This document shows positions 1,915-61,937 of a stretch of 64,000 nt of DNA, piece after piece (positions within the stretch are counted from its first letter, which is position 1; each line of letters starts with the position of its first letter). Under the pieces are notes generated by a model. The model was given only the letters and a program-made list of their open reading frames with translations. It searched no databases and was not told where the DNA came from. Made by a program: the position numbers and the translations under genes. The stretch lies in the IMG/VR virus record IMGVR_UViG_3300042566_001780, positions 227,688-291,687 of that record. One strand, written 5' to 3'.

Positions 1915-2799
1915 ATGAAACTTACACTTAAACAATTTCTAACTGAAGGCGGTAAAGCTACTGCTCATTTAGGTACGTCTCGAGCTTCGCAATCTGATAT
2001 TCAGGAAGCTCTTAAAGTATTGGCTCCAATAATGGATACAACACCAGATAAGTTGAAAGAGCACATTCTTGGCTCTGGTCGATTGACTTTGGTGGGAAAG
2101 CAAAAAGATTCTGGGGATCTTGATATTGCAGTCATATCTAAAGACCCGGAATCTTTAGTGAGTGACATCTCAAAAGTGGTGAAGTCTGAACCACGAAAGA
2201 TAGGTTCATCTACTTATTCTTTTGCCGTACCTGTACTTGGTTCAAAAAAGATTCAAGTAGACATTATGTTTGTACCAAGTCTTGATTGGGCAGCATTTTC
2301 TCACTATGCCTCAGAAGATTCAAAGCATAAAAGTGGGGTTCGAAATGAACTATTGCATGCTACATTGAAGCATTCTGCAGAACCCGGAAAAGACTTGATA
2401 TTACGAGATAAAGATGGCAACTTGATCGTTCGAGTTAGCCGATCTTACGATTTGATCAATGGTGTCAAACGTGTTTTTAAAATTGCCAAGAAACGTAAAG
2501 ACGGTAAAGGTCGCGTCAAAGGACTTGACCACGTAAGCCCTGAAGAAGTTGAGAGCACGCTGAAAGAACTTGGAATAGTTGATCAATTCAGCAAAGAAGC
2601 TGACATAATTCTTGATCCAAAGAGATTTGCAGAAATGTTATTTGGACGCAATACTCAAATAGCAGATCTTGGAAGCACAGAGAGTTTGATAAAACTAATA
2701 TCTGCCAGAAAAGATAAAAATGAAATCTTTAAGGATGCAGTATCTGGAATAAAAGATCGGGGATTTGTTGTCCCCGATGAGTTAAAACAATTTAGTTAA
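1915..2799 (+). CDS. Pol-beta-superfamily nucleotidyltransferase with N-terminal capsid-targeting-like leader
   Basis: GS...SGDLDIAV and IQVDIMF acidic triad; starts MKLTLKQFLTE. Confidence 0.6.
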   Translation: MKLTLKQFLTEGGKATAHLGTSRASQSDIQEALKVLAPIMDTTPDKLKEHILGSGRLTLVGKQKDSGDLDIAVISKDPESLVSDISKVVKSEPRKIGSSTYSFAVPVLGSKKIQVDIMFVPSLDWAAFSHYASEDSKHKSGVRNELLHATLKHSAEPGKDLILRDKDGNLIVRVSRSYDLINGVKRVFKIAKKRKDGKGRVKGLDHVSPEEVESTLKELGIVDQFSKEADIILDPKRFAEMLFGRNTQIADLGSTESLIKLISARKDKNEIFKDAVSGIKDRGFVVPDELKQFS

Positions 2800-3113
2800 G
2801 CTGGATCAGGATATCGTTCTTTAATTTCCTGAATTTTATCTAACCACTCTTGCATTGTGGCTTCACCTCTTTGTGCCTTAAAAAATAAGGGATCGGCTTC
2901 TTTTTTATAAGCATGAAATCTTAATGCGTCTATTTGTTCTGACGTTTTAACAGGCGCATAATATACCCAAGAGCTATTTTCCCACTCATATCCTTCACCC
3001 GGTTTTAGCGGGACTTCAATATATCCACTTGGATATGATGCTAATATTTCAGCAGAAGGTTGATTTGTCGTCTGCCAATAGCCTATACTAGGATGATAAA
3101 AACCTTTTTCCAT
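2796..3113 (-). CDS. Tail fibre assembly/chaperone-like protein
   Basis: Directly downstream of a fibre gene; C-terminal EADPLFFKAQRGEAT..WLDKIQEIKERYP is typical of fibre-associated proteins. Confidence 0.6.
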   Translation of the reverse strand: MEKGFYHPSIGYWQTTNQPSAEILASYPSGYIEVPLKPGEGYEWENSSWVYYAPVKTSEQIDALRFHAYKKEADPLFFKAQRGEATMQEWLDKIQEIKERYPDPA

Positions 3114-3131
3114 TAATTGCCTCTTTTAAAA

Positions 3132-5048
3132 TTACCGTAATTCGTGCCAAGCTCTAATTGGGCCATCTGGCAAATTATACCAGTGGTTAGGTGGAACCAC
3201 GGTAGTAATATGTTCCCATTCTCCAGAATCACCGTCTGCCTGGTACATGTTAACATAGGTGGTTGTTGAAACCCCGACATAAATATTACCCGATCCACCA
3301 ACATCAATCCAAATATTTAAAGCAATAGTTCTTCCCGTAGTATTCTGATACCACGTTCCTGCAGATCTAGTCACAGCTTGCCAAGTTTGTCCAACCCCCA
3401 ATGCATTAGCCGCTGTTCCTGCAGTTAGCGCGTTACCTGCATTAGTGGCATATGTGGCATTTGCACTGTTGCCAGTAATATCTATATCCCAGGTGCCACT
3501 TGCTCCGGTGCCGGTAAGACTAGGAGCACCAATAGTGTTGTAGCTGACTGTTCTTGCAGTATTTCCATTAAAGGTAGTACCACTTGCTACACCAGCTCCG
3601 CTATTATTAAATGTTAACGCTGCACTAGTTTGCGCGGTTATTGTTATGTTAGCACTTCCATTAAAACTTACACCATTAATGGTTCTAGCGTTAGCTAACA
3701 CGTTTGCAGTATTAGCGGCGATTGATGTCTGCGTAGATACTGCAGTAATTCTGCCTTTACCGTCAACTGTAATCACCGGGATTGCAGACGCAGATCCAAA
3801 AGTCCCATTATTTGCATTGACTGTTGTCAATGTCAACGTGCCGCTAACGTTTGCTGCCCCGTTAAAGCTGACTGACCAAGCTGCATCACCGGTGGCAGCT
3901 ATGGTTCTTGCGGTTGTTAGCTGATTTGCAGTATCGGCAATAGCAGCCGTTGAAATAGGAACTTGTACAACACCAGTTACCCGACCTTTATTGTCGACAG
4001 TGAGTTGCGGTATCAGCGTAGACGATCCGAAAGTACCAGCATTAGCATTTACGGTGTTCAATACCAAGTCAGAGCTGACATTTTCAGATCCATTAAAATT
4101 AACAGACCAAGCAGCATCACCAGTAGCAGCTATGTTTCTAGCTGTTGCGAGTGAATTTGCTGTAGCTGCAGTGACGGAAGTAGTAGAAACACCGGTAACT
4201 CTACCTTTACTATCGAGCGTAATGACTGGTATTAAGGATGAAGAACCATATGTACCAGCAGTTGCTACTTCAGCTAGTGTGAGAGCTGAAGAGGCATTTG
4301 CTGAGCCGTCGAATGTAGTAGACCAAGTACCGTCGCCTGTTATTGAAATCGTTCTTGCTGTAGCAAGTTTAGTGGCATTCGTGGCATTTGTTGCTGTTGA
4401 TGCAGATGTTGCTGAACCTACTGCCAGAGTTGATTGAGATGCCCAGGTTGGGGCTCCAGTGCCACCAGATAACAGAACCTGTCCTGATGCTCCGACACCG
4501 CTAATTGCATATGTAGATGCTGCGCTATATACAATTGCTCCTGCAGCAACCGAAGTAGAACCGGTACCGCCCTTTGCAACTGACAGGGTACCACCAATAT
4601 TAGAAAGATTTAAGTTCGCCTCAACTACATCTAGAATCGGGTTACCAGAAACACCAGATGGATTCGTAATACTAAGACGAGAAGAACCAGATACCAGGGT
4701 TCTAGATGCTGAAGTACCGACACCGGTTTTGACATAAAAACCAGTTACTGCTTGATTGATTAATGCTGATAATTCTGCATTGACCTGTTGGTAGGCTGAA
4801 GCTGGTAATCCACCTAGAGTGTCGGCGCCAATTTGGGAGCTGATTGATCTAACCCATCCCAAAGCAGGTTGATCACCAAATCCAGCATTAGCGTCTGGCA
4901 GCAAACCAAAGAAATACAGACCTGCCGATCCTTCTACCGAGTCTACAGTTTTATAGAACAGTGATCCATCGAAAGTTAAAGCGGGTTCTGGCAGTACAGA
5001 TCCGTATGGTATAATCGCGCCGCCGTTAAAGGTTTTATTTGTCGTCAT
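3132..5048 (-). CDS. Tail fibre protein
   Basis: 638 aa; three ATART..TGD..W...F.GSAN..TL..V..GT.GSS..IP..T.D.KGR.T repeats, ARTINGVSFNGSANIT, C-terminal LGVGQTWQAVTR tip domain. Confidence 0.88.
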   Translation of the reverse strand: MTTNKTFNGGAIIPYGSVLPEPALTFDGSLFYKTVDSVEGSAGLYFFGLLPDANAGFGDQPALGWVRSISSQIGADTLGGLPASAYQQVNAELSALINQAVTGFYVKTGVGTSASRTLVSGSSRLSITNPSGVSGNPILDVVEANLNLSNIGGTLSVAKGGTGSTSVAAGAIVYSAASTYAISGVGASGQVLLSGGTGAPTWASQSTLAVGSATSASTATNATNATKLATARTISITGDGTWSTTFDGSANASSALTLAEVATAGTYGSSSLIPVITLDSKGRVTGVSTTSVTAATANSLATARNIAATGDAAWSVNFNGSENVSSDLVLNTVNANAGTFGSSTLIPQLTVDNKGRVTGVVQVPISTAAIADTANQLTTARTIAATGDAAWSVSFNGAANVSGTLTLTTVNANNGTFGSASAIPVITVDGKGRITAVSTQTSIAANTANVLANARTINGVSFNGSANITITAQTSAALTFNNSGAGVASGTTFNGNTARTVSYNTIGAPSLTGTGASGTWDIDITGNSANATYATNAGNALTAGTAANALGVGQTWQAVTRSAGTWYQNTTGRTIALNIWIDVGGSGNIYVGVSTTTYVNMYQADGDSGEWEHITTVVPPNHWYNLPDGPIRAWHELR

Positions 5049-5093
5049 AGGTCAATCTGCCCTGGTAAGCATTCTAATCGAGGTGTTTCATTC

Positions 5094-5213: not shown

Positions 5214-6194
5214 ATGACAGTGAATGCACAAGCTATCAACCCAACCTTCGAGCTCAACGCAGATTACCAAAAAGCCATATCTGATCTCATGAATCATGGC
5301 TACGAATCTGCTCCCCGCGGCCAAAAGACCAAAGAAATCATCAACTATTCATTCTCGCTGGTCAACCCACGCAATCGAATTGTTCATTTTCCAGATCGTA
5401 AAACTAGTCTAAAGTACCTACTTGGTGAGTTTATCTGGTACATTTCCGGCAGTGCAGACCCAAAGGGTATTCTTCCCTATGCAAAATTCTGGGACTCTAT
5501 TCGCAATCCCGATGGTACAGTAAATTCCAACTATGGTACTCGATTGTTTGGTCATCATCAAGACAGTCTGGTGACACGCGATGGACAAAAGATGTCTCAA
5601 TGGCAAGCTGTCATTAATATCCTCACTAAGGATAACGATAGCCGTCAAGCTATCGTGAATATTCATATGCCCAGCGATCGCTGGGATGGGAATAAAGATG
5701 TTCCATGCACCATCTCGCTGCAATTCCTAATTCGTGATTGGCGTCTGCATATGATCGTCACTATGCGAAGTAATGATGTCATTATGGGTACTTCAAATGA
5801 CATCTTCCAGTTTACTATGCTGCAGGAAGCTTTGGCATTGGAGCTTCGTAAAACTATGCCTGCTTTGGAACTCGGTTATTACTACCATAACGCTGGGTCT
5901 CTCCATATCTACGAGCGTCACTTTGAAATGGCCAAAGGAATCATGGAAGATAATCGAAAGCTTGAGCTTTCAATGCGGCCAATGGATTCATTCTCGGATA
6001 ATGTGCTGACCGGATTGGTTGGTGTTGAAGCAGCTTGGCAACATGCTGGAGCACCCAAAGATTTTGACTTTGCTAAAGTTGGAGCATGGCAATTGCTAAC
6101 TCCATACTGGCAAGATCTCGTTTTGATGTGTTTTGCTGATGATCATTCTGCAATGCATCGAGTTTTTGCTATTCCGGAAGACGAGGAACATTGA
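5214..6194 (+). CDS. Thymidylate-synthase-fold dCMP hydroxymethylase/hydroxylase (T4 gp42-like)
   Basis: AAGGAG RBS then ATG 5214. DSRQA, PCTISLQFLIR, MRSNDVIMGTSND (Asp where dUMP-specific ThyA has Asn), GSLHIYERHF. A canonical thyA is present separately. Confidence 0.8.
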   Translation: MTVNAQAINPTFELNADYQKAISDLMNHGYESAPRGQKTKEIINYSFSLVNPRNRIVHFPDRKTSLKYLLGEFIWYISGSADPKGILPYAKFWDSIRNPDGTVNSNYGTRLFGHHQDSLVTRDGQKMSQWQAVINILTKDNDSRQAIVNIHMPSDRWDGNKDVPCTISLQFLIRDWRLHMIVTMRSNDVIMGTSNDIFQFTMLQEALALELRKTMPALELGYYYHNAGSLHIYERHFEMAKGIMEDNRKLELSMRPMDSFSDNVLTGLVGVEAAWQHAGAPKDFDFAKVGAWQLLTPYWQDLVLMCFADDHSAMHRVFAIPEDEEH

Positions 6195-6195
6195 A

Positions 6196-6462
6196 ATGTC
6201 AGGTGGATCCTTTGACTATGCTTATTACAAAATTTCAGATTTTGGTGATAGTCTTGAAGCTAAACTTCTTGCTTATGATCCAGATGATTGGAACACAGAA
6301 TTTGTCAAGTCACTGGATCCATCTACTGTAGCACTTTTGAAACAGATTGCTAAAGAAGCCCAAACGCTTGGACCAAAGGCAAGAGCAGTCGAATGGCTAT
6401 TTTCCGGTGACTATGGAGAGCAAACTTTTCTTGATGTCATTAGCAAAATTGAACAAAAATGA
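6196..6462 (+). CDS. Hypothetical protein (MSGGSFDY family)
   Basis: ATG 6196, coupled to neighbouring genes. Confidence 0.6.
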   Translation: MSGGSFDYAYYKISDFGDSLEAKLLAYDPDDWNTEFVKSLDPSTVALLKQIAKEAQTLGPKARAVEWLFSGDYGEQTFLDVISKIEQK

Positions 6463-8198
6463 ATTACGAAAAACAAATTCTTGAAGCTTATGATTTTCTA
6501 GGCTTCAAACCTCGGGGAAATCAGGTTGACAACATCAGTGAAATTGTAACAGCATTTCGAGATGATGGGTTTAGCTCTGTTACGTTATCCGCCCCAACTG
6601 GTACTGGTAAATCCATTATTGGTGCAGTAACAGCTGAAGTTTTGCATAAGCTCGAAAGTCCTGACCTCCATGTTGGTGCTAGCTTTCTGTTGTCACCAAC
6701 CAATATTCTTAGCGAGCAATATTTCAAGACCTTCCAAGAAGGCCGTGACCCTCTTGATACTCGATTTCGAATGATTAAAGGCGCAGCTAATTTCCCGTGC
6801 GCTGCACTTTCTACAGATACTGAGCCACAAACTGCAGAGATGTGCGCGCTTCGATTGTTCCAAAAGTCTGGTGAACAATCAATGATTGACACCTTTTGCA
6901 ATGGATGTGAATATGCATTGCAGAAACGACTGCGCGATCGTTCTCGCCACTTGATCACAAATTATGCATACTATTTCATTGATAGAATGTATACACAGAT
7001 GATGGCTAAAAGAACTGTTTGCGTATATGATGAAGCACATTTGATCAATGATCTTTTTACTGAGCACAATGCCATTTATGTCAGTGACTCTCGGTTAAAG
7101 AAGATGTCGGAAGAAATTCTTGCAAATCTTTCTATTAGCGATGTTGGTGTATTCAAAAAGATCAAAGATGTCACTAACCTCGTCAAAGAAGGTAAGGTGG
7201 CAAAATCCAATTACAAAGATGTGCTGCTAACTCTTGCAGAAGTTTATGGCATCGTAACTGAACTTGCTCAGAATGCTGCAGATGCAGCAGGAAATGATCA
7301 TAAGCGCTATATTGCCATGTCAAAGTTGTCCAAGAAATACTTTGGACTCGGTTGTAAAATTGGCGATTTGTTTGAATACAACTACGATCATGCATTTGAT
7401 TTCAAACCGGCCAATCCAAAATATAATCAATCTGAAAATGAGCTGAGTGTAAAGCCTATCTTTGTAGCTGACATGTTTGGGGTGCTGAATAATGCAAAGT
7501 ACAATTTGTTGATGTCTGGCACACTTGGCGAAGTTTATGCTAATCGTACTCTGACTCTAGAAAATAACAAACACATTCGCTTGGCACCAACTTTTCCAAC
7601 TGAGAATAAGAAGGTCGTATTCTACAAACCACAGGCATTAAGCAAAGATTCTCTGCAGTTGAATCAGGTAGCAACTAAACTAAAAGCTGCGTGCCAAGAG
7701 ATTGTCAAATATCATACTGACAAAAAAGAGCGAGGTATTATTTTGACTCCGTCATTTGCGTTGTCTGAAATGATTGCCGATATGATTTCAAAAGCAAATC
7801 TTCCAGTTAGAATTTTTGAACATCATAAAGGCGATAAACTTAGCCTTGCGCTGAACAGATTTAAAGATTATTCTGGTGGTCCAGCTGTTATGATCACTGC
7901 TTCTGGCTTTGAAGGCATGGACCTGCCTGGTGATTTGAGCCGCTATCAGATTTTAGTGAAAGCTCCGTATGCATCATTAGGAGAAGCACGTGTTAAATTG
8001 ATCTTGGAAAAATACCCAGATCTTTATAAGCTGCTTTGTCTAATGAAGATGGTGCAAGGTGCAGGTCGTAGTGTGCGTTCGCCGACTGACTATGCTACTA
8101 CGTACATCCTTGATTCAAATGCCCAGCGCATTTGGACTGATAAGATCAACGAGTGGCGTGATGAATTCTCTATCAGCTTCACCTCCATCCTAGAATGA
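6459..8198 (+). CDS. DinG/YoaA-like SF2 helicase with Fe-S-type cysteines
   Basis: APTGTGKS, DEAH, EGMDLPGD, QGAGRSVRS; four Cys in the N-terminal part. Confidence 0.88.
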   Translation: MNYEKQILEAYDFLGFKPRGNQVDNISEIVTAFRDDGFSSVTLSAPTGTGKSIIGAVTAEVLHKLESPDLHVGASFLLSPTNILSEQYFKTFQEGRDPLDTRFRMIKGAANFPCAALSTDTEPQTAEMCALRLFQKSGEQSMIDTFCNGCEYALQKRLRDRSRHLITNYAYYFIDRMYTQMMAKRTVCVYDEAHLINDLFTEHNAIYVSDSRLKKMSEEILANLSISDVGVFKKIKDVTNLVKEGKVAKSNYKDVLLTLAEVYGIVTELAQNAADAAGNDHKRYIAMSKLSKKYFGLGCKIGDLFEYNYDHAFDFKPANPKYNQSENELSVKPIFVADMFGVLNNAKYNLLMSGTLGEVYANRTLTLENNKHIRLAPTFPTENKKVVFYKPQALSKDSLQLNQVATKLKAACQEIVKYHTDKKERGIILTPSFALSEMIADMISKANLPVRIFEHHKGDKLSLALNRFKDYSGGPAVMITASGFEGMDLPGDLSRYQILVKAPYASLGEARVKLILEKYPDLYKLLCLMKMVQGAGRSVRSPTDYATTYILDSNAQRIWTDKINEWRDEFSISFTSILE

Positions 8199-8254
8199 TC
8201 TCGGTTCATTCTTCAAAGCAGTGTACAATTTCATTTTGAAATTAATGGAAACCT

Positions 8255-9430
8255 ATGTCGGAAGATATTGATGATTTTATAAGTGGGCTTTTGTCTTCTT
8301 CAAGACCATCAAAAAGCCAAAGATCTGGCATTCGAGGTATTCGTTCTGCAGATGAGCGAGCAGTTAAAACGCGAAGATATCGAACTGCGGGAATGTCAAA
8401 AATTGGTTTACCGACTGCGTTAGACGACCCACAATTTTTTAAGGCTGGTATGGAAAACAAAGACTCTGTTATTTTTGGTGCGTATGGTGTAGATGATTGG
8501 CTAAGCAGCACATTCCTGCAACAAAGCATTCGAGATGGTATTACGACCATCATGAAGTCCGGCACCTGGATTATTCCAGCTAACTGGGATTTTGTTACAT
8601 GGTGCGCTACTATTTCTCCACGGTACAACTTCATTAGCGCCAATCGTGCAATGATCTTTACAAATTGGGGCCAAATTGAAGTTGGTCTCGGCCGCCAAAA
8701 GATTGAAGTCGAGATCAACGGTAAAATCAAAGAAGTCAATCAGTTTATTGACTTGCTGCATACTCAGTTCAAGCAGGCAGAAAACCTAATTGAATGGGTC
8801 TATGGCCAACGCGGTGAAAGCATCAGCGTGCCACTGAATTACCGTCCTGCTATTAATGAGGCGTACCCTTGGATCAATGGTGGGCTCGACGCCTATATTG
8901 ATGCCTACATGAATTCTGATGCCAGTGTTCTTATTCTTATTGGGGCACCGGGAACTGGTAAGACAACGTTTGTTAAAAACCTTATCCATCGCTCTGGTGC
9001 AGATGCAAAGGTTACCTATGATGTCAACGTCATGCAGAGTGATGGCATCTTTGCGTCTTTCATTGAAGGTCGTGAAAAATTCATGATCATGGAAGATGCT
9101 GATGCCTTCCTCAAGAGTCGGGCTGATGGCAATACTATGATGCACCGTTTCCTGAACGTGTCAGATGGTCTCATCTCTGCATCAAATAAGAAGCTGGTGT
9201 TTAGCACGAATCTTCCATCGGTGCGTGATATTGATGATGCTCTTATGCGTCCAGGCCGGTGCTTTGATGTGATGGAGTTCCGACCTCTTACTCGAGATGA
9301 GGCTATTGCAGTGTGTGACAAGACTGGCCGTCCCCATCCAGGTGATGGTTCCAGTTTCACTCTTGCATCTCTCTTTGGGGATTCTCCAAATACTTCTAAA
9401 GTTAAAACGAAGAAAGTTGGTTTTGTGTAA
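8255..9430 (+). CDS. AAA+ ATPase
   Basis: GAPGTGKT, MIMEDAD, FSTN, DDALMRPGR. Confidence 0.88.
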   Translation: MSEDIDDFISGLLSSSRPSKSQRSGIRGIRSADERAVKTRRYRTAGMSKIGLPTALDDPQFFKAGMENKDSVIFGAYGVDDWLSSTFLQQSIRDGITTIMKSGTWIIPANWDFVTWCATISPRYNFISANRAMIFTNWGQIEVGLGRQKIEVEINGKIKEVNQFIDLLHTQFKQAENLIEWVYGQRGESISVPLNYRPAINEAYPWINGGLDAYIDAYMNSDASVLILIGAPGTGKTTFVKNLIHRSGADAKVTYDVNVMQSDGIFASFIEGREKFMIMEDADAFLKSRADGNTMMHRFLNVSDGLISASNKKLVFSTNLPSVRDIDDALMRPGRCFDVMEFRPLTRDEAIAVCDKTGRPHPGDGSSFTLASLFGDSPNTSKVKTKKVGFV

Positions 9431-31601: not shown

Positions 31602-31625
31602 GTGTATAGATCAATATAACAAATT

Positions 31626-38873: not shown

Positions 38874-39327
38874 ATTGAAAAAACTGCAAGGCAAAAAAAT
38901 TGGATTTGTAGCAAGTTGTTTTGACTTGCTGCACGCAGGTCATGTAGCCATGCTTAGTGAAGCAAAGAATCATTGTGATTTTTTGATTGCTGCATTGCAA
39001 GTAGATCCGTGTGTTGATCGGCCACACAAAAATAAGCCAGTACAAAGCATAGTTGAGCGGCAACTACAGCTAGCATCATGTAGATTTGTGGATGACATCA
39101 TCATTTACCATACAGAAAAGGATCTAGAAGATCTTCTGCTGATTCTGCCTATAGATGTGCGTATTCTCGGCGTCGAATATCAGGATCTAGAATTCACCGG
39201 TAGACAAATTTGCATTGATCACGGAATTGAGCTTGTTTTCAATTCGCGAAATCATTCTTTTAGTTCAAGCGGTTTGCGGAAGCGTGTGCTTGAAGCTGAG
39301 CAAAAAGCTGCGACAAAAGTAGATTAA
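38860..39327 (+). CDS. Cytidylyltransferase (TagD/RfaE-II-like HxGH nucleotidyltransferase)
   Basis: CFDLLHAGH, KPVQSIVER, RNHSFSSSGLR. Confidence 0.87.
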   Translation: MILNELKKLQGKKIGFVASCFDLLHAGHVAMLSEAKNHCDFLIAALQVDPCVDRPHKNKPVQSIVERQLQLASCRFVDDIIIYHTEKDLEDLLLILPIDVRILGVEYQDLEFTGRQICIDHGIELVFNSRNHSFSSSGLRKRVLEAEQKAATKVD

Positions 39328-39881
39328 GCAAAAATCTTGTTTCCATCCCAGAAATAGAATTTTGCATCAGGGAAGACTCGAGTGTTTGAGTCTTCCGATC
39401 TAATTCCATTATCTTCGATCCACTCAAAGAACTCTTGAGAAAGATGTCTAGCTCTTTCTCCAGAAGATAGAAAAAGTTGAACCGGAATAGGGTCATTTCC
39501 ATTCATCAACAGAATGGCATCTGTTCTAGCACGGCCTTCGTGACTCACGACTTTCACGCTCTTGATACTATCATCTTCTTCGCGGGTGATTGACAAAATC
39601 AAGAATGGCGTAGCTATTGGTTCTCCACGTTTCATCATCTCAGCAAAGTTCCTTGCATCCTCTGTTCTATCTGTTGCAGTAGCTAAGGCCTTGAATGTAG
39701 TCGGTTTGATCCAAGCTACAGCTCCACGATAGAGGATGTTTTGTCCCATAGGTGTAGCTCCCATCCCGTTTTTGTTATCAAAGTTGACTTTGCCAACTTT
39801 GAACTTTTCGTTTACGTTCGATGGTGTAGCTTCTGGGAAATTTTCCTCTTCTAAGAGGTTCAAAAGTTCGCGTAAGATCAT
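39324..39881 (-). CDS. ParB-like fold protein with capsid-targeting-like leader
   Basis: PIATPFL...VVSHEGRAR; starts MILRELLNLLEEE; CTAAATA at 39913-39919 (-). Confidence 0.5.
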   Translation of the reverse strand: MILRELLNLLEEENFPEATPSNVNEKFKVGKVNFDNKNGMGATPMGQNILYRGAVAWIKPTTFKALATATDRTEDARNFAEMMKRGEPIATPFLILSITREEDDSIKSVKVVSHEGRARTDAILLMNGNDPIPVQLFLSSGERARHLSQEFFEWIEDNGIRSEDSNTRVFPDAKFYFWDGNKIFA

Positions 39882-44714: not shown

Positions 44715-44722
44715 AAATAGCG

Positions 44723-44779
44723 CATTTTTTGTCTCCTTCTATAAATATGAATATATTTTACTGAAGGAGACAAAAAATG
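44723..44779 (+). promoter_or_regulatory. Late promoter TATAAATA (44740-44747) inside a 17-bp inverted repeat that masks the endonuclease RBS and ATG
   Basis: CATTTTTTGTCTCCTTC (44723-44739) is the exact reverse complement of GAAGGAGACAAAAAATG (44763-44779). Confidence 0.85.
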
Positions 44780-45886
44780 TCCATGAAACATAACTTTACT
44801 TTTATTGATACCGATCTTCAAAATCCAATTAATTTTGGAATTAATGAAATTACCCAAAAGAATTTAAACAAATCTATATCTTCCAAGTTTAAAAGAATTC
44901 TTAAAAAAGACTTTATTGATTTTCTATTAGCAAAAGTACCTATAGATAAAAAAATATTTTGCAATTGGTGCGGGCGGCCAAATGTAACATGTAAAGGCAT
45001 TTATGGTATAGATTTTTCTAATATGACAGTATCTCTTATGGATATTGAATACTCCAAAAAGTTACACTGTTGTTATGGAACCACAGAATGTCAAAGTAAA
45101 AAATTAAACCCTAATTCTATAGAATTTGTTTCTAAATCAAGAAATTTGTCATTAGAAGAGGCGCGCGAATACATTCTGAATAGAAATAAATCTCCATTCT
45201 ACAGCAGAAATCATAAAACTTTAGATGATTACAAAAAATATCAAGGATCTAGATGCTTTTCAGATGATGTAGAAAGAAATAAAGAGATAATTAATAAACA
45301 AAATTTTTCAAGAAGTTTAGATGGATTTAAGGAAAAATATGGTCCTATTGAAGGACAACAAAAATATGATCTATATCAATCCAAAAAAGCCATAACTTTA
45401 GAAAATCTTATTAAAAAGTATGATGATCCAAAAGTTGCAGAAGAAAAACTTTTATCTTGGAAAAGATCAACATCTTTGACATTGGAAAATTGTATTAGAA
45501 GACATGGACCAGTAGAAGGGCCTAAGTACTATAAAAAATCCGTTGAAAATGGCGGGCTATATAGTACAATAACTTTTGCATATGACGGGTCTGCGTTAAG
45601 GAGTAATAATGAAAGAAAGTTTTATGAATTACTGCTAGTTGCAGGTATCCCTAAAGAAGAAATATTGATAGATAATTGCTATCCAGAAAGTGCATTGCGA
45701 TATGATTTTTTTATAAAATGCTTAGGCATTTTTATAGAGATAGCTGGTATGAATGATGATCAATATAACGAGAAAATGATTCTAAAAAATAAAATATTCA
45801 ATGCATGGATAGTAAGACCGTTAGAGATTGATAAAGCAGCAACTAAAATAATAGAGTATTACAATTTTTTAAAAGAAGAGAAATGA
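44777..45886 (+). CDS. Free-standing putative homing endonuclease (C-terminal PD-(D/E)XK-like domain)
   Basis: Very AT-rich; KYG..EG..KY repeats; C-terminal RS..E...YDF....IFIE..G; lies between the intein halves. Confidence 0.72.
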   Translation: MSMKHNFTFIDTDLQNPINFGINEITQKNLNKSISSKFKRILKKDFIDFLLAKVPIDKKIFCNWCGRPNVTCKGIYGIDFSNMTVSLMDIEYSKKLHCCYGTTECQSKKLNPNSIEFVSKSRNLSLEEAREYILNRNKSPFYSRNHKTLDDYKKYQGSRCFSDDVERNKEIINKQNFSRSLDGFKEKYGPIEGQQKYDLYQSKKAITLENLIKKYDDPKVAEEKLLSWKRSTSLTLENCIRRHGPVEGPKYYKKSVENGGLYSTITFAYDGSALRSNNERKFYELLLVAGIPKEEILIDNCYPESALRYDFFIKCLGIFIEIAGMNDDQYNEKMILKNKIFNAWIVRPLEIDKAATKIIEYYNFLKEEK

Positions 45887-45887
45887 T

Positions 45888-46331
45888 ATGTTTGAGAAAC
45901 TTCTGGATGATTTTGAAACTATTGGGAAAAGATTGGTCAAAATTAATGCTGTAGACTTTGCAGGTCTTGCCAATACAGTTGATATTGAGGTTGAAGATGA
46001 TAATTCATTTACCCTATCAAACGGCCTCATTTCTCATAATTCTGCCCGCTCTTCCATTCAGGCTGCTCGCGGTAAAAACAAGTTTATTGGATCTTTTTCT
46101 CTTCGGGGCAAGCCGCTTAATGTATATGATGCCGAAATTAAGGATGTGATTGCAAATGCTGAATTTGCAAACATGCTTGCTGTTACAGGATTGCAACTTG
46201 GAGAAAAAGTTGAAGCTGAGTCTGATGGAAATTGGCACATCATTGAAATTGACGGTAAAGACGTATTGGTTAATGAAAATGATTTTATTAACATTAACGG
46301 TGATCTTATTAAGGTTAAAAATTTGATCTAG
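45888..46331 (+). CDS. C-intein (51 aa) + topoisomerase II large subunit, fragment 2
   Basis: VDIEVEDDNSFTLSNGLISHN|SARS (Ser+1 at 46041), then LRGKPLNV...TGLQLGE. Confidence 0.92.
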   Translation: MFEKLLDDFETIGKRLVKINAVDFAGLANTVDIEVEDDNSFTLSNGLISHNSARSSIQAARGKNKFIGSFSLRGKPLNVYDAEIKDVIANAEFANMLAVTGLQLGEKVEAESDGNWHIIEIDGKDVLVNENDFININGDLIKVKNLI

Positions 46332-46373
46332 ACTTTGACGGTTATTGCTAAATACATTTTTGAAAGGATAAAA

Positions 46374-47423
46374 ATGAAATGTACTTTATGCAATAATGAA
46401 ATACCAAGCATCTATAAAAATAGAATTGCATGTTGTATTAGTCCGTGTGAGTCATTTTTCATAAAACCAAGAACAATATTATGGAAAATAAAAGTATTGG
46501 GCTTCAATGAACAAAAAGTCCTAGATGAAAACCGTAAAAGAACGCAAAAAGCTGGAAATACGAGAAAATCATTGGGGCTTTCTAAAGGTGCAAATAATCC
46601 AAATAGCAAACAATATTTGTTAAATCTAGGTAAGAGTGAAGATGAAATAGCACAATTTCATAAATCTACTGCCAAAAAAATGGTGGATACAAAAATAAAA
46701 GATGACTTTTATAAGGTAAAATCTAATAATCCATATTCTTATGAATACTGGATATCTCGCGGATATTCAAATGAAGAAGCTAAAAATAAAATAAGATCTA
46801 AAAATCATAATTGTGCCGAATACTGGATATCTCGCGGATATTCAAATGAAGAAGCTAAAAAACTAAGTTCAGAAAGTGCTGATACTAATTCATTAAAAGC
46901 AAAAATCAAAAGACATAAAAATGAAGGTCATAAAAAATATATGGAAACAAAAAATAAAATGTCTGGTAGTTGGAATCCAAAATCTGCAAATAGTGTTAGT
47001 TTTTCATCTTCACAATCAGCAAATGCCTTTTTTAAGAAAATATATAAATTTGTTAGGCGGTTGGGTTTCACTAGACATGAGATGACGTTTAAATTAAATT
47101 TCGGTAAAGAATTTTGGATTAAAAAAGATAAAAAAATTTATTTTTATGATTTTGTTTTGCACCCCCTAAGATTGATAGTAGAATTCAACGGCGAACATGT
47201 TCATGTTGATCCTGGTTTATCTTTAGAAGAAAAATTAAAATGGAAACACGCGTTTTCTAAAATGGATGCTTTTAGTATTGAAGAATATGATAAGCAAAAA
47301 AATATAGCAGCTGCTGCTAGAGGGTATAAAATAATTTATGTCTGGTATAAAGATCAGGAATCTGGATTTAATTCTATTGTTGATTTTTTAAAGGAAAAAT
47401 ATAATCATGGTACAAAAGATTAA
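46374..47423 (+). CDS. Free-standing putative homing endonuclease (Vsr/DUF559-like C-terminus)
   Basis: YDF......IVEFNGEHVH ... D..K...A...GY.IIYVW; YW.SRGYS.EEAK repeats; CTAAATA at 46348-46354. Confidence 0.75.
   Translation: MKCTLCNNEIPSIYKNRIACCISPCESFFIKPRTILWKIKVLGFNEQKVLDENRKRTQKAGNTRKSLGLSKGANNPNSKQYLLNLGKSEDEIAQFHKSTAKKMVDTKIKDDFYKVKSNNPYSYEYWISRGYSNEEAKNKIRSKNHNCAEYWISRGYSNEEAKKLSSESADTNSLKAKIKRHKNEGHKKYMETKNKMSGSWNPKSANSVSFSSSQSANAFFKKIYKFVRRLGFTRHEMTFKLNFGKEFWIKKDKKIYFYDFVLHPLRLIVEFNGEHVHVDPGLSLEEKLKWKHAFSKMDAFSIEEYDKQKNIAAAARGYKIIYVWYKDQESGFNSIVDFLKEKYNHGTKD
46743..46861 (+). repeat. 44-bp perfect direct repeat (46743-46786, 46818-46861)
   Basis: GAATACTGGATATCTCGCGGATATTCAAATGAAGAAGCTAAAAA twice, encoding EYWISRGYSNEEAK. 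Confidence 0.9.
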
Positions 47424-47990
47424 AGTTAAAGCAAAAAATGTTAAGCCAACTCCCGATCAACTGCGAACTTATGTTCAGCAACAAGGACGTTTGACGACTC
47501 GAAATACGAATTTGCGTTTTGGTAAACTGATTGTGCTATCAGACCAAGACCTTGATGGATAGCTTCGGCTATCCATATTACATACACATTTAAAGAGTTA
47601 TTTGGATTTCATGTTTCTTCACTGCTGCTTTCCTTTTGGGCGAAGTACTGGCCAGAGTTGTTCAAACTCGGCATGGTATATCGGATGAACACTCCGCTTT
47701 ATATTGTCAAAACCAATAAGGGCGAACTTTTAGAATTCTTCACTGAAGAAGATTATGAGCGCTGGGCAGCAAAGGGTATCAAACATAAAGCTGACTATTA
47801 CAAAGGTCTTGGCGGTTTTGATACGGAAACTTTTGAGCGATTTATTGAGAATCTTGATAAGTATCTTGTTAAAATTACAGAGCTTGAAGCCCAAGACCTT
47901 GCAAAAATTGAGCTAGCTTTCTCTAACAAAGAGCAAGATGCTCGCAAAGAGTGGCTTGAGGATATTCGATACTTTGAAATTGAAGATTGA
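47407..47990 (+). CDS. Topoisomerase II large subunit, fragment 3 (T4 gp60-like), decoded by a 47-nt translational bypass: join(47407..47559,47607..47990)
   Basis: MVQKIKVKAK...LRFGKLIVLSDQDLDG-TAG, resuming in another frame as FHVSSLLLSFWAKYWPELF...YYKGLG...RKEWL. This restores the DxDxDGxH TOPRIM motif. Confidence 0.9.
47555..47606 (+). promoter_or_regulatory. Ribosome bypass signal (take-off hairpin, coding gap, mini-SD, landing codon)
   Basis: ATGGATAGC-TTCG-GCTATCCAT stem-loop; GAG 47595-47597; GGA 47604-47606. Confidence 0.88.
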
Positions 47991-47995
47991 AAATT

Positions 47996-49336
47996 ATGCT
48001 AAAAACAGAATCAACTGCAACAGAATTTATTGACGAAAAGCTTCGTCTTTACTCTGCTCACTCCAACATTCGAGGTATACCATTTATTGGAGACGGCTTC
48101 AAACAAGCTCACCGAAAGGCTGTTTGGGGTATGCTTAAACGTGGTGAAAATGCCGACAAAGATACTATTGAAAGAATTTCCGCAAGGTCCGCCAGTGACA
48201 CAAACTACGCGCATGGCGTAGGCTCACTTGAAGGCACAATGGTTGGACTGGCGCAGGATTATGCTGGCAGCAACAATATTCCATTGTTTGAAAAGTTTGG
48301 TCAATTTGGTGATCGTCTCAACAAAAAGCCTGCAGCCTCTCGCTACATTAAAGCAAAGCTTGCACCTTACTTTCGTCAGCTTTTCCGCAAAGAAGATGAT
48401 CTCATTTTCGAGTTCATGACTTCAAATGGAATGGAAGTTGAGCCAAAATACTTTACTCCTCTTTTGCCACTTGTTCTGGTAAACGGAGCTGAAGGTATGG
48501 GTACAGGTCATAGCACCTATATTATGGCCTATAATCCAGAAGAGATTAAAACCAACATCATTAAGCTGCTTGATGGCAAGAAACTTAAACCCAACACAAT
48601 GCTTCCATGGTGGAAGGGGTTTAATGGTTCTGTTAGCCGTAATCCAGAAACTAGTCAACTTGAAATTACAGGTTGTTACAACATTAAGGATGGGCGTACA
48701 CCAATTTTGACTGTTACTGAGCTTCCTATCGGCATCCAAAGTGATCAATACAAAGCTCATTTGGACAAGCTTGAAGATCGTGGAATTATTCTCAGTTACG
48801 ATAATCTTTCTGACAAGCGCGGTTTTGAATTCGTTATTCGGATTCCAAAATCCACTGCAGAAAAAACTGATGAAGAAATTAAAAAGCTCTTCAAACTGGC
48901 ATCAAAAGAAACAGAGAACTTGACTGTTTGGGATGGTGATGGTGTCCTTAAACGGTATGAAAATGTCGAGTCACTTCTTGAAGAATGGGTTGAATGGCGT
49001 GTTGCGCGATTTGAGGATCGTCGCCAAGCTCTAATGAAAAAGACCAAAGAAGACATTCTTTGGGCAAGTGAAAAATACAAGTTCATTATTTTCTATCTGA
49101 AGAATGTCAACTTCTTCCGTGATAATGAAACTAAAGTAATTGTTGAGAGGCTTCAAACTGAAGGTTTTACCCGCATTGAAGATCTTCTAAGCATGCCAAT
49201 GCGATCACTCACTAAGCAAAAGATTGAAGAACTCAAGAATGAAGTTGAAAAACTGAAAGTCATTTTGAATGATCTTGAAAATGACAATGCAACTTCAATG
49301 TTTAAACGAGATCTCAAAGAGTTGAAAATAGCATGA
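47996..49336 (+). CDS. DNA topoisomerase II medium subunit (T4 gp52/GyrA-like)
   Basis: DGFKQAHRK, YAHG..SL, AASRYI (catalytic Tyr), LVNGAEGMGTG, ELPIG. Confidence 0.93.
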   Translation: MLKTESTATEFIDEKLRLYSAHSNIRGIPFIGDGFKQAHRKAVWGMLKRGENADKDTIERISARSASDTNYAHGVGSLEGTMVGLAQDYAGSNNIPLFEKFGQFGDRLNKKPAASRYIKAKLAPYFRQLFRKEDDLIFEFMTSNGMEVEPKYFTPLLPLVLVNGAEGMGTGHSTYIMAYNPEEIKTNIIKLLDGKKLKPNTMLPWWKGFNGSVSRNPETSQLEITGCYNIKDGRTPILTVTELPIGIQSDQYKAHLDKLEDRGIILSYDNLSDKRGFEFVIRIPKSTAEKTDEEIKKLFKLASKETENLTVWDGDGVLKRYENVESLLEEWVEWRVARFEDRRQALMKKTKEDILWASEKYKFIIFYLKNVNFFRDNETKVIVERLQTEGFTRIEDLLSMPMRSLTKQKIEELKNEVEKLKVILNDLENDNATSMFKRDLKELKIA

Positions 49337-54612: not shown

Positions 54613-54637
54613 AAAAGGGGGATTATTCCCCCTTTTT
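54613..54637. terminator. Bidirectional terminator
   Basis: AAAAGGGGGA-TTAT-TCCCCCTTTT between convergent genes. Confidence 0.75.
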
Positions 54638-55377
54638 CATTTCTTCGTCTTTGGATCTGGACTATCTAAATGGATAAGAAGTTCCCTAACAAGTTCTGAG
54701 CGTTGAACATCAGAATTGCCAAATTCAACAATGTTAATAAGACGCGATTTGCCACGAACTTTACGAATAATCCAATCAAGACCATGTTCTTCAATCCCAA
54801 GCTTGTTGAAGTTCAAGTCACATTGAGATGGGTCACCATTTACCACAAACGTCGAATAATCACCGGCACGAGTGACAAATAATTTCATTTCTTGCGGCGT
54901 GGCGTTCTGGCTCTCATCGAGTATAACATATGAGTTCCGAAAGGTTCTTCCACGCATGAAGGACAACGGAGCAAATTCAATTTTGCCTGCATCAAGAAGT
55001 TTTTTGGCCATAGTTGGACCAACTAATTCTTCAGTAGCATCTAAAAGAGGCTTTAGATATGGAGCGATCTTTGAATCTAAATCTCCCGGTAAAAACCCGA
55101 GAGATTGACCTGCTTCAACTGCTGGTCTAGTCAATACCACTTTTTGGACATCTCCAGCCAGCAATCGCTCCATTGCTACGGCCATAGCTAAAAATGATTT
55201 ACCAGAACCTGCTGGGCCACTTCCGATTGTAAGTGGCGAATTTCTCAACGACTCAAGATACATTTCTTGAGCAAAAGATTTAGGCTGTGGCACAAAGCGA
55301 AGTTTGATAACTTTGTTTCCTTCTTCTTTTATTGGTTGTGGATACTTGTTTTCACGATTTAGTAATTTGCGACCCAT
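54637..55377 (-). CDS. phoH: PhoH-like ATPase
   Basis: GPAGSGKS, LTRPAVEAG, GFLPGD, FMRGRT, ILDESQN, GDPSQCD. Confidence 0.92.
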   Translation of the reverse strand: MGRKLLNRENKYPQPIKEEGNKVIKLRFVPQPKSFAQEMYLESLRNSPLTIGSGPAGSGKSFLAMAVAMERLLAGDVQKVVLTRPAVEAGQSLGFLPGDLDSKIAPYLKPLLDATEELVGPTMAKKLLDAGKIEFAPLSFMRGRTFRNSYVILDESQNATPQEMKLFVTRAGDYSTFVVNGDPSQCDLNFNKLGIEEHGLDWIIRKVRGKSRLINIVEFGNSDVQRSELVRELLIHLDSPDPKTKK

Positions 55378-55572: not shown

Positions 55573-55968
55573 TTAGTCTTGCTTTTTGACAACATAACGA
55601 ATCCAATCAGCAACATTCATCTGCTGATTATGAAGTAAACATTCACCTGCCTCAAGACACCAAAGTAGATATTCTGCTAATTCTACTTGATCAATTGGGT
55701 CTAACATCTCGATGTAGGAACGAGTTGCAGATGAAGTAGCTTCGGAACCGGGTAATACAGGATTTTCAAATTGAAGATCAGCGCTCTTCAAACCATTTTT
55801 GAAAAACTCTGCAACTCTAGCAATAACTAAAGTTTGATATGCATTAGTAATTTGGCCGGATTTAACGACTTCTTTAAGGGTTAAGTCCACTAGCTGTGGA
55901 GCATGACCTGGAGCCCCATAGCATTTTTCATTTTCAGTTAATGAAGAAACAAGTTGATGTAATTTCAT
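55573..55968 (-). CDS. Hypothetical late protein with capsid-targeting-like leader
   Basis: Starts MKLHQLVSSLTE; in the operon behind CTAAATA 56537-56543 (-). Confidence 0.6.
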   Translation of the reverse strand: MKLHQLVSSLTENEKCYGAPGHAPQLVDLTLKEVVKSGQITNAYQTLVIARVAEFFKNGLKSADLQFENPVLPGSEATSSATRSYIEMLDPIDQVELAEYLLWCLEAGECLLHNQQMNVADWIRYVVKKQD

Positions 55969-59657: not shown

Positions 59658-60650
59658 ATGAGCAACACAGCAAAAGTCACCTGGAACGATGCACTGGGCC
59701 GCTGGGAAGCGCTTTTCAATGGTGAAGTTCTGGCTTCTCGTCGGGACTTCAAAGGTGGTATCGATTATCTGCGGAACGCAATTGAAGGCGGTTTCAATCT
59801 TCGTGCAAAGAAATTCAATGTGACGAAGATCGAAATTGTCAATGCTCCTGTTGAAGCAGAGTTTGATGATTCTGATGGCGACGCTCAAATTGCTCGTGAA
59901 CATGAAGTGTTCCCCATCAACGAGCGTTTTGCCATCATGGAAGACTACATTGACATGGTGAGTCAATTCCAATTGGCTTCTACGGTGGTCACTGGCGAAG
60001 GTGGTCTTGGTAAAAGCTACACCGTCATGAAGACACTGTCGGCCAATGGTCTTCGTGATGTTGGTTCGATGGAGCCTGGCGAACGATTCCTTGCTGGCCG
60101 CGGTTATGTGGTGGTCAAAGGGTTCTCTACTGCTAAGGGCCTGTTTCGTACACTGTATGAGAACCGCAACAAGATCGTAGTCTTTGACGATCTGGATTCT
60201 ATCCTGAAGCAAGCTGATGCAGTCAATTTGCTTAAGGCTGCACTCGATTCCTACGATACTCGTATTGTGACGTGGAATTCTGAAAGCTCTTTTGGAGGTG
60301 ATGATGATCTGCCAAAGTCTTTCGAATTCACCGGTGGTGTGATCTTCATCTCCAACTTGCCAAAGCACAAGATTCCCCAAGCAATTCGTAGCCGGGCAAT
60401 GTGTGCAGACGTCAGCATGACTCGCAGTGAAGTTGTTGAGCGTATGCGAGTGATTGCAGTCTCTGAAGAATTCATGCCTGGGTTTGAAGTGGAGCATAAG
60501 CTTGAGGCTCTGGAATTTGTTGCAGAAAATGCACATAATCCGCTCATTACTGAACTGAACCTTCGTTCTTTGGTCAACGTGGTCAAAGCACGTGCTGCAA
60601 AGCCTGATAGCTGGAAACGCCTTGGACTGTACTCGATGATCAACTCTTGA
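59658..60650 (+). CDS. P-loop/AAA ATPase
   Basis: GEGGLGKS, IVVFDDLD, LLKAALDS, FTGGVIFISN, AIRSR. Confidence 0.85.
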   Translation: MSNTAKVTWNDALGRWEALFNGEVLASRRDFKGGIDYLRNAIEGGFNLRAKKFNVTKIEIVNAPVEAEFDDSDGDAQIAREHEVFPINERFAIMEDYIDMVSQFQLASTVVTGEGGLGKSYTVMKTLSANGLRDVGSMEPGERFLAGRGYVVVKGFSTAKGLFRTLYENRNKIVVFDDLDSILKQADAVNLLKAALDSYDTRIVTWNSESSFGGDDDLPKSFEFTGGVIFISNLPKHKIPQAIRSRAMCADVSMTRSEVVERMRVIAVSEEFMPGFEVEHKLEALEFVAENAHNPLITELNLRSLVNVVKARAAKPDSWKRLGLYSMINS

Positions 60651-60692: not shown

Positions 60693-60825
60693 CCATTTGT
60701 GGATGTGCAACTATTCCACAGAGATTTCATGATCACCGGGACTCACCTAATTGATCAGAAAACAATGCTCATGACCTCTACTCGCTAAATAATCAAAATT
60801 AGCATGTGAAAAGGCATTAAGCATA

Positions 60826-61236
60826 ATGACTGATCAGCAAAGAGAACTTATCTTAAATGAAGCTAGTAATGCAGCTATCACATTAGATCACCAGCTTAAT
60901 AACCTGATGGATGTGTATGATTCCTTTATTGACACATCAAGCGATGATATAAATTCAATCTTATTTGAAGATTTGATCATATCAATTGAAGCTTTAAGTA
61001 TACTACCTGGATTAATTGCAATGGAATTAATTTCATGGAAATCTGGGACTTCTAGTATACCTTTGATGGAATTTGATGTAGACATTATTAATGAATTTGC
61101 TATTCATTTGAATTCGATAGTTCATTTTCTCAAATTACACAATGCTTCATTAATAGGTTTTGATAACAAAAAAGTTGACATGTCACTTATGATCATACGC
61201 ACTGCAAATCAATTGCTTGGAACAGCACGAGTCTGA
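60826..61236 (+). CDS. Hypothetical late protein
   Basis: CTAAATA at 60785-60791. Confidence 0.55.
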   Translation: MTDQQRELILNEASNAAITLDHQLNNLMDVYDSFIDTSSDDINSILFEDLIISIEALSILPGLIAMELISWKSGTSSIPLMEFDVDIINEFAIHLNSIVHFLKLHNASLIGFDNKKVDMSLMIIRTANQLLGTARV

Positions 61237-61238
61237 AA

Positions 61239-61937
61239 ATGAAATTACTCAAAGAACTTTTAGAAGGTAAACTTGAAAAGGAATCTATCTTTTCAGTTCA
61301 CATCCCAGCATTTGTTTTCAATGGGCGTGATTACCACTATGACGTAGCAAAAATCCGTGTCATGGCAACCTCAGAACAACATGCTATTGATATTGTGAAT
61401 GATCACAAGGTAGATGTCATTCGATTTTTGACATCACAACGATCTTCTCCATCAAATAAAAAGCTGATTGATCCAAAGAAGCAGGTTAAGGACGCAATCG
61501 TTTTCAAGCCATCTTATTTTGCTAAGAAGACATCAATTGTTCACAGCAAGTCAGTGCTCACTGATCATGGTGGATTCAAAACAATTCATTTGACTAATGC
61601 TTTGACTGAAGCACTTGACGATAGATTGTTGACAGCTGCAAGCTATGCATTCACTTTAGTTAAGAACTCTAGAGAAGGCATTGGCAATCAAGTTGATGAA
61701 CCAACTTTTATTGGTAATAACACTATGGAATTCGGTATTCGCGATTTCGGGCAATGGGAAATGTCGGAAGGCGAAGAAGATGATGGTGATTATGATTGGA
61801 TGGTGCCAAAAGAATCTACAATTGCTAAGTTGAAAGCTTATCTTGAAACAGCAAAAAAGCATCATCCAGTCATAGAATACGATTTTCATATTGGTGAAAA
61901 ATCGTGGATCTATGTTTCAATCAAATTAGTGGGTTGA
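61239..61937 (+). CDS. Hypothetical late protein with capsid-targeting-like leader
   Basis: Starts MKLLKELLE; internal ALTE. Confidence 0.6.
   Translation: MKLLKELLEGKLEKESIFSVHIPAFVFNGRDYHYDVAKIRVMATSEQHAIDIVNDHKVDVIRFLTSQRSSPSNKKLIDPKKQVKDAIVFKPSYFAKKTSIVHSKSVLTDHGGFKTIHLTNALTEALDDRLLTAASYAFTLVKNSREGIGNQVDEPTFIGNNTMEFGIRDFGQWEMSEGEEDDGDYDWMVPKESTIAKLKAYLETAKKHHPVIEYDFHIGEKSWIYVSIKLVG

Follow-up and report, generated by a model that had tools for sequence, protein, structure and literature searches.

Introduction

A capsid targeting sequence on the internal proteins IPI, IPII and IPIII of bacteriophage T4, and on Alt and gp24, was reportedly described by Mullaney and Black in 1996. Such N-termini read MKTYQEFIAE in ipII and ipIII, MAKINELLRE in gp24 and MELITELFDE in Alt in the T4 record, and the maturation site of the capsid protein gp23 reads FLTE|AEIGG. 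Cleavage in T4 is specific for (L/I)-x-E, the textbook rule of Black, Showe and Steven (1994), and the sites read from the record fit it. The head-internal proteins of T4 reach the core by way of a propeptide of 10–20 residues, and the protease gp21 cuts after its Glu (PMC5694885, PMC3012670). Within the IPIII leader, residues 4 and 7 serve targeting and residues 8 and 10 serve processing; Asp at position 10 blocks cleavage but keeps targeting (PMC9026906). The present analysis concerns a stretch of 64,000 nt, hereafter the window (positions 227,688 to 291,687 of IMG/VR virus record IMGVR_UViG_3300042566_001780), and a leader of 8–12 residues that was first noticed at the N-termini of eight proteins encoded in it. 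This leader is very likely a T4-type capsid-targeting propeptide that marks proteins to be loaded into the head and, judged from its sequence, is probably a homologue of the T4 peptide.

A further system close to it is that of the phiKZ-like giant phages (phiKZ, 201phi2-1 and SPN3US), whose ejection proteins carry N-terminal propeptides cut at S/A/G-x-E (PMC5694885, PMC10052503). These phages have a homologous protease family that cuts after Glu, and many of their head-internal proteins are processed and ejected, as is proposed here. Their propeptides are mostly longer than 100 residues, however, with a small residue (Ala, Ser or Gly) at P3 rather than Leu; there is no short portable consensus leader, and the capsid lineage is a different one. 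A literature search found no description of a capsid-targeting sequence for the jumbo phages XacN1 and RsoM2USA or the RaK2 group.

A Short Leader Shared by Unrelated Proteins

A simple gene call of the whole contig gave 363 genes covering 94% of the genome, and 24 of the encoded proteins begin with the leader. The eight N-termini quoted in the first-pass annotation of the window were all found in the sequence as given, and the leader is commoner than those eight, so that the observation is real and larger than first noticed. When the carriers were compared all against all by BLAST after removal of their first 14 residues, they fell into 13 unrelated groups: 12 paralogous leucine-rich repeat (LRR) proteins, and 12 proteins without detectable similarity to each other or to the LRR family. 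The annotation had called its eight proteins unrelated, which holds for most of them, but those at 30426, 33503 and 34063 (genes are named here by the window position of their start codon) are members of the 12-member LRR family and therefore do not count as independent cases.

In all 24 carriers, the leader ends in L-x-E, or in L-x-x-E with Phe or Leu at P3. Three variants can be told apart: MKLxQLFE (8 residues), M.(T)FKQFLxE (10–11 residues) and M.ILKELLxLxE (12 residues), and the favoured one differs from genome to genome. The leaders within the window are of the 8-, 11- and 12-residue kinds, and are shifted in register relative to that of T4 IPIII.

Half of the carriers (12/24) are paralogs and an MKL start is common (27/363 proteins), as would be expected if the shared N-terminus reflected chance and common ancestry and had no function of its own. 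A six-residue matrix ending at the Glu was trained on the 12 LRR paralogs only, with internal windows of the same proteins as background, and still picked out unrelated carriers. Among the other 351 N-termini it gave 5 matches of at least 9 bits where 0.07 were expected (p about 1e-8), and 12 of at least 5 bits against 2.6 expected. The result was repeated at the N-termini of four other genomes. One high-scoring protein, g227 (MQTRFINPLDELFE), was unmasked by its orthologs as a false positive, since these have Asp or Asn at the critical position and are homologous through it, while true carriers keep the Glu. Chance and paralogy were rejected on these statistics and ortholog comparisons, and are scarcely credible as an explanation. 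Another conserved N-terminus, M(M)NERIKEL, is seen on small proteins (75–85 residues) of the early region at genome 92–99 kb; it is not the leader.

Head Genes and the L-x-E Signature

The window is the final 64 kb of a 291,687 bp virus contig with 40% GC and an estimated completeness of 82% by CheckV. Its DNA gave no megablast match to GenBank phages. T4-type head genes are found in one block of the contig: a portal-like gene, an S77 prohead protease of the Peptidase_S77/T4 gp21 family (genome 70238–70864; PF03420, 95 bits), a small gp67-like gene, a scaffold-like gene of 293 residues (phrog_10922 match; within the protease-capsid block at genome 70.2–73.4 kb) and a gp23-family capsid protein (genome 72131–73405; PF07068, 297 bits). 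The nearest cultured capsid proteins are those of jumbo myoviruses, namely Ralstonia phage RsoM2USA (53% identity), Stenotrophomonas phages CM1/RAS14, Xanthomonas phages Xoo-sp13 and XacN1, and then the RaK2/121Q group (40%). A related capsid protein is encoded on 305 IMG/VR contigs, several of them 310–370 kb in length. Because of these relatives, the phage is best placed within the T4 superfamily on a distant jumbo branch, as one of its uncultured members.

The ending of the leader recurs in this head module. The predicted capsid maturation site is KHLVE|TAAAT, that is, L-x-E; the LxE|TA is kept in four genomes, and lies at a distance upstream of a common (I/V)RR motif close to that of FLTE|AEIGG in T4, as judged by eye without alignment. 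The scaffold contains 19 L/I-x-E sites in 293 residues (6.5 per 100 residues), the highest density of the proteome (mean 1.26), and the protease is within the top five; the scaffold of relatives starts MDEILKKLLE. Two of the carriers, g192 and g204, are likewise rich in L/I-x-E sites and, by their sequences, could belong to the degradable core, as gp67/gp68 do in T4, instead of being cargo.

The resemblance to T4 thus takes in both the peptide and its setting: a short N-terminal sequence with an aliphatic-x-Glu end on otherwise unrelated late proteins, in a phage that also encodes a protease of the gp21 family, a scaffold like gp22 and a gp23 capsid protein. Within the clade, the leader seen most often, M(I/K)TFKQFLxE, has the length of MKTYQEFIAE and keeps Thr3, an aromatic residue at 4, Phe7, an aliphatic residue at 8 and Glu10. 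The residues mapped in IPIII are accordingly present in the 10-residue form MITFKQFLxE, which dominates both the family of the 1915 protein and RsoM2USA. The short variant resembles the leaders of Alt (MELITELFDE) and gp24 (MAKINELLRE), and the cargo is fast-evolving in both systems. There are also differences. The capsid protein is only distantly related to that of T4 (the best cultured matches, at 40–53%, are jumbo phages), about 24 proteins per genome are tagged rather than a handful, and three leader variants (8, 10–11 and 12 residues) coexist and are swapped among orthologs. The predicted cargo is dominated by LRR proteins and includes enzymes outside the known packaged set of T4.

The Leader Is an Exchangeable Module

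Three whole related metagenomic records were compared, G001 (336 kb), G003 (350 kb) and G004 (343 kb), which have 45–57% GC. The matrix derived from the present genome is also strongly enriched at the N-termini of all three (in G004, 34 matches against 2.6 expected). The orthologs of unrelated carriers always have a leader, often of another variant, and similarity begins directly after the Glu. For example, MRLKELFE|DIHV corresponds to MKVTFKQFLE|DIHV, and the 1915 protein, MKLTLKQFLTE|GGKA, has orthologs starting MRSFKQFLLQE|GGKA and MKLKQLFE|AKSSGK. Orthologs of the 39881 protein start MITFKQFLFE (G001) and MQTFKQFLSE (RsoM2USA), with homology beginning past the leader, those of the 34150 ATPase start MYTSFKDYLVE and MKINFASYLVE, and those of the 55968 protein keep an N-terminal hydrophobic-x-E in all three relatives. 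Variants are also swapped in the orthologs of four further carriers. The 1915 protein has 157 metagenomic homologs by database search; among the 120 matches listed, nearly all full-length homologs start with MITFKQFL[LIVFTA]E or a minority variant, placed directly before GG(K/A)AT.

Several homologs of the 1915 protein have two tandem leader ends (e.g., MITFKTFLTEHFLLE and MITFKEFLAEGILLE), resembling successive cleavage sites. One LRR paralog (genome 190661–191842, minus strand) has a 140-residue insertion exactly between its leader, MKLAQLFE, and the conserved N-terminal domain, so the Glu again marks a module boundary.

These comparisons bear on whether the leader might have a function unrelated to the virion, for example as a signal of late genes in translation initiation or at the mRNA level, as a tag for degradation, or as an amphipathic helix of a general kind that serves oligomerisation or membrane contact. 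Starts with MK- are common among efficiently translated genes, many leader genes have no obvious Shine-Dalgarno sequence, and the LRR model described below predicts a helix for the leader. Yet the Leu residues of the leaders draw on all six of their codons without change to the amino acids; the constraint therefore acts on the peptide and not on DNA or mRNA, and a nucleotide-level signal was rejected on this ground. The Glu at the module boundary is invariant while orthologs swap the rest of the leader, and two carriers are virion proteins in RsoM2USA. A role outside the virion is, on this evidence, very unlikely.

The carriers differ from other late proteins in their divergence. Best identity to the three relatives is 31% for LRR carriers, 44% for singleton carriers and 52% for other late proteins (p = 9e-5). 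By this sequence measure the tagged proteins evolve faster than other late proteins, as expected of host-facing proteins and as in the internal proteins of T4.

Leader Genes Are Predominantly Late

The heptamer CTAAATA is the most enriched upstream of genes, and 54 of its 69 copies are placed 14–110 nt upstream of a gene start on the same strand. Genes were assigned to a class by the nearest upstream motif on the same strand, the assignment resting on promoter motifs only. By this measure, 21 of the 24 leader genes are in the late class, compared with 147 of the 339 other genes (p = 2e-5). Counted by transcription unit, a leader gene is present in 15 of 69 late units and 3 of 85 others (p = 5e-4), so that the genome-wide scan of motif against promoter class proposed in the first-pass annotation found leaders enriched in late units, and not equally frequent elsewhere. 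The same annotation had seen no leader on early genes, and indeed the 24 genes directly preceded by the early-type motif TGnTAnAAT include none with a leader (0/24). The promoter motifs thus suggest that leader genes belong to the late class. As only 21 of 168 late-class genes carry it, the leader is not a general feature of late genes, which is a further point against a function in expression.

The statement that nearly all leader genes lie behind CTAAATA stood as statistics (21/24), but failed in detail for 1915, 30426, 33503, 55968 and 61239. Three of these (33503, 55968 and 61239) occupy later positions within late operons. For the gene at 30426, the lack of its own promoter is due to an IS607-type element that lies upstream in its operon. 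The motif just ahead of 1915, CTATTTAG, is on the other strand (CTAAATA 1901–1895, minus) and serves a divergent gene of 1543 residues. The sole late-type candidate for 1915 is a T4-style motif, TATAAATA (1728–1735, plus strand), which is 187 nt upstream and within the divergent gene, making its assignment uncertain. An open reading frame (ORF) of 44 codons (1784–1918) overlaps the ATG of 1915 in an ATGA arrangement.

The early-type promoters resemble -10 boxes of the extended kind, TGTA(T/C)AAT, and TCATCC often comes after them (e.g., at window 27,650–27,700). Many genes of this phage are not preceded by an obvious Shine-Dalgarno sequence.

Tagged Proteins in Virions of a Cultured Relative

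Ralstonia phage RsoM2USA has 12 proteins starting with M.TFKQFLxE among the 460 called. Sodium dodecyl sulphate-polyacrylamide gel electrophoresis and liquid chromatography-tandem mass spectrometry of its purified virions found ten proteins (PMC8504454), and two of these ten, ORF89 and ORF132, are tagged (hypergeometric p = 0.025). ORF89 starts MKTFKQFLSE and continues past the leader Glu with SKDYLTTAEDISTYLLNTWGYE; its calculated mass of 28.56 kDa compares with 28.57 kDa in the paper, and it is a homolog of the LRR family (BLAST E-values down to 2.0e-11, for g207 against ORF89). ORF132 starts MKTFKQFLNTLME, continues past the Glu with ALPLSTAR and has a calculated mass of 76.62 kDa. As in the present phage, the RsoM2USA homolog of the ParB-like protein is also tagged (MQTFKQFLSE), but the short MKLxQLFE variant is rare there. 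The published study does not mention the leader and reports no N-terminal processing (PMC8504454). These data give modest independent support for the leader as a virion tag.

The mass spectrometry of RsoM2USA establishes presence in virions and not location (PMC8504454), and the leader might instead be a virion-targeting peptide that is not a cleaved tag of head cargo: a docking peptide for the tail, baseplate, or fibres and hairs (on which LRR proteins could be adhesins), or an uncleaved anchor for head decoration. LRR domains are classical binding modules and possible receptor-binding parts, and one LRR carrier has a GH19 cell-wall hydrolase domain, of a kind often found on tails. In addition, the 735 kb uncultured phage LR756501.1 encodes (5995–9036) an LRR homolog of 1013 residues that starts MKKLNELFD, with Asp in place of Glu, a substitution that blocks cleavage in T4 (PMC9026906); as evidence, this homolog was set aside as too distant to interpret. 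Against docking, the nucleotidyltransferase, ATPase and ParB-like carriers are unlikely fibre parts, and the tag is absent from the proteins of tail and baseplate in this genome. The leader also has the ending that marks the capsid maturation site and recurs all along the scaffold, and matches the internal-protein leader of T4 residue for residue at the mapped positions. A docking or anchoring role is accordingly considered unlikely, and loading into the head remains the preferred reading.

Folds and Predicted Cargo

Scanned against Pfam and PHROGs, 20 leader proteins were left almost without annotation. From an alignment of 38 sequences, AlphaFold2 modelled the 1915 protein with a mean predicted local distance difference test score (pLDDT) of 93, and residues 1–10, the leader, are the only segment below 50. 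Its body matches Pol lambda/beta by Foldseek (probability 1.00, E = 2e-5), with a low TM-score of about 0.33. The family of 38 homologs has the pattern GS..DxD..D, in which G53-S54, D70 and D116 are invariant and D68 is at least 90% conserved, and ESM Atlas neighbours of the protein include NTP_transf_2. It has no Pfam match, and a PDB sequence search with the family profile found none. The fold match together with the conserved GS..DxD..D pattern leads to the prediction of an active enzyme, and on the model the protein looks like an active Pol-beta-type nucleotidyltransferase, the fold first proposed for it.

The LRR family consists of tandem repeats of about 21 residues, of LxxLxxLxGxP type; Pfam LRR_4 matches are under the curated cut-off. 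The AlphaFold2 model of the 30426 protein, built from the paralogs of this genome only, is a short-repeat LRR solenoid (pLDDT 86), the first ten residues of which form a helix of lower confidence. Its best PDB matches are the LRR domains of IpaH, SspH and YopM (probability 1.00), in agreement with the fold originally given. A leader-bearing LRR protein encoded at genome 170116–171615 (plus strand) is fused to a GH19 (chitinase/lysozyme-like) domain, and is a candidate virion-borne cell-wall hydrolase.

Pfam AAA and phrog_1250 matches uphold the ATPase assignment of the 34150 protein. The description of the 39881 protein as ParB-like is a lead only: its ESM Atlas feature and fold neighbours are ParB_N and ParB-CE (TM 0.4–0.5), but it has no Pfam or PHROG match. 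The predicted cargo comprises 12 fast-evolving LRR proteins (one with the GH19 muramidase-like domain), the Pol-beta-like nucleotidyltransferase, the P-loop ATPase, the ParB-N-like protein and about 8 orphans.

Leader Genes and Their Surroundings in the Window

The nucleotidyltransferase-like protein (294 residues) is encoded at 1915–2799 on the plus strand, and its leader, MKLTLKQFLTE, is specified by codons at 1915–1947; sequence, model and homologs support this assignment.

The LRR genes of the window are clustered on the minus strand. The first (29545–30426) encodes a protein of 293 residues with the leader MKLTSLYE (codons 30426–30403) and is supported by sequence, paralogs and model. The second is split by an IS607-type insertion at 30996–32861 (plus strand; identified by Pfam), which carries a serine resolvase gene (30996–31601) followed by TnpB (31626–32861). 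The 5′ part of the split gene (32862–33503), identified by sequence and paralogs, has the leader MKLKQLFE (codons 33503–33480) and stops in mid-repeat, and a leaderless 3′ fragment at 30432–30893 aligns only with the repeat region and C-terminal part of the paralogs. The element (PF00239, 67 bits; PF01385, PF07282 and PF12323) is single-copy in the genome. Late-promoter-like motifs are seen ahead of both of its genes (TATAAATAG at 30957 and GCTAAATAAG at 31594). The insertion accounts for the absence of a leader and of a promoter nearby, and the element itself lies outside the leader system. The third LRR gene (33500–34063, 187 residues, leader MKLKQLFE) is the first gene of a late operon, with CTAAATA at 34094–34088 (minus strand).

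Divergent from it is the gene for the P-loop ATPase (34150–35787, plus strand; 545 residues), with the leader MVKLTLSEFLVE (codons 34150–34185) and CTAAATA at 34115–34121. A paralog at 59658–60650 (plus strand; BLASTP 28% identity, E = 6e-28) provides a contrast case: its N-terminus is MSNTAKVTWND, and only the longer 34150 protein has the leader, together with an N-terminal extension of 270 residues. The two ATPases form a natural tagged and untagged pair.

The gene for the ParB-N-like protein (39324–39881, minus strand; 185 residues) has the leader MILRELLNLLE (codons 39881–39849) and CTAAATA at 39919–39913 (minus strand). This start is not the first ATG of the longest ORF but one within it, and is the likelier one because CTAAATA would be just 14 nt ahead of the first ATG. 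A fold-unassigned protein of 131 residues with the leader MKLHQLVSSLTE is encoded by the third gene of a late operon (55573–55968, minus strand), for which CTAAATA is found at 56543 and a variant, TTAAATAG, at 55997. The last leader gene (61239–61937, plus strand), second in a late operon with CTAAATA at 60785, encodes an orphan of 232 residues; its leader, MKLLKELLE, scores 10.4 bits with the LRR-trained matrix.

Other features of the window were noted. A PhoH-like ATPase gene (54637–55377, minus strand; PF02562, 224 bits) adjoins the late operon with the 55968 leader gene. A low-GC island at 44000–48000 (0.32, against about 0.40 elsewhere) starts behind TATAAATA at 44740 and looks foreign. 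The stretch at 20000–24000 is GC-rich (0.47), and repeated small Cys-rich proteins starting with MC(E/T)..LPCPFCG are encoded at, for example, 23141–23779 and 29291–29548.

Discussion

Taken as a T4-type system, the leader would act as follows. Late in infection, the tagged proteins would be made along with the head proteins, and the leader, as a short amphipathic N-terminal helix, would bind the scaffolding core. Through this proposed binding, the tagged proteins would be enclosed as the gp23-type shell forms. The gp21-family prohead protease would then cut after the Glu of the leader's L-x-E, and the same protease would trim the capsid protein at KHLVE|TAAAT and chop the scaffold. By analogy, we infer core binding, cleavage, packaging and, finally, ejection of the cargo into the host. 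The 24 tagged proteins are most economically read as head cargo or degradable core components.

The proposal that the leader is a T4-like capsid-targeting sequence, made in the first-pass annotation, came through the computational tests: a gp21-family protease lies beside scaffold and gp23, L-x-E is found in the capsid site and scaffold, variants are swapped exactly at the Glu, MITFKQFLxE matches MKTYQEFIAE, the leader is the only low-confidence part of the 1915 model, and two of ten RsoM2USA virion proteins carry it. Several points weigh on the other side. The phage is known from a metagenomic contig alone, estimated as 82% complete, and the 8-residue variant, common in this genome, differs in hydrophobic register from the IPIII leader of T4. 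The genes at 1915 and 30426 have no clear late promoter of their own. The support from RsoM2USA consists of two proteins from excised gel bands (p = 0.025), with no N-terminal processing reported. Finally, the more distant XacN1, whose virion proteome has been published and which packs a chitinase, a lipase and an M23 peptidase in its virions, has no clear leader on those three proteins and no genome-wide N-terminal enrichment; the expansion of the leader is therefore specific to the clade.

The mechanism is already known from T4 and its close relatives. New here are how far the phage is from T4 in phylogeny, how many proteins are tagged, that three leader variants occur side by side and are swapped, and that LRR proteins dominate the cargo. 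A bolder reading, which we put forward as a tentative possibility, is that this uncultured T4-related jumbo clade maintains a large and fast-diversifying repertoire of head-packaged, injected proteins. Its core would be the LRR proteins with their IpaH/YopM-like short repeats, of which a genome has 12, including one joined to a muramidase-like domain, and of which one is abundant in RsoM2USA virions. Once injected, they would bind components of host defence or other proteins of the host, and so be the phage equivalent of the LRR effectors that bacteria deliver. The number of copies packaged, or their place within the head, might depend on which of the interchangeable leader variants of 8, 10 and 12 residues is present. 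The interest of the system would rise considerably if the LRR proteins are injected host-targeting modules of this sort.

Should the tag function like its T4 counterpart, one simple sequence rule for N-termini would predict, across an uncultured jumbo clade, which proteins enter the head and are delivered along with the DNA. The rule gives about two dozen candidates per genome, mostly orphans, which form a list for early-acting anti-defence and takeover factors. The short natural leader variants are also candidates for packaging foreign proteins into large phage heads in laboratory strains. If the reading is true, LRR proteins would be a major class of virion cargo, and the capsid-targeting system of T4 would go back much further, and allow more expansion, than one would gather from the T-even phages.

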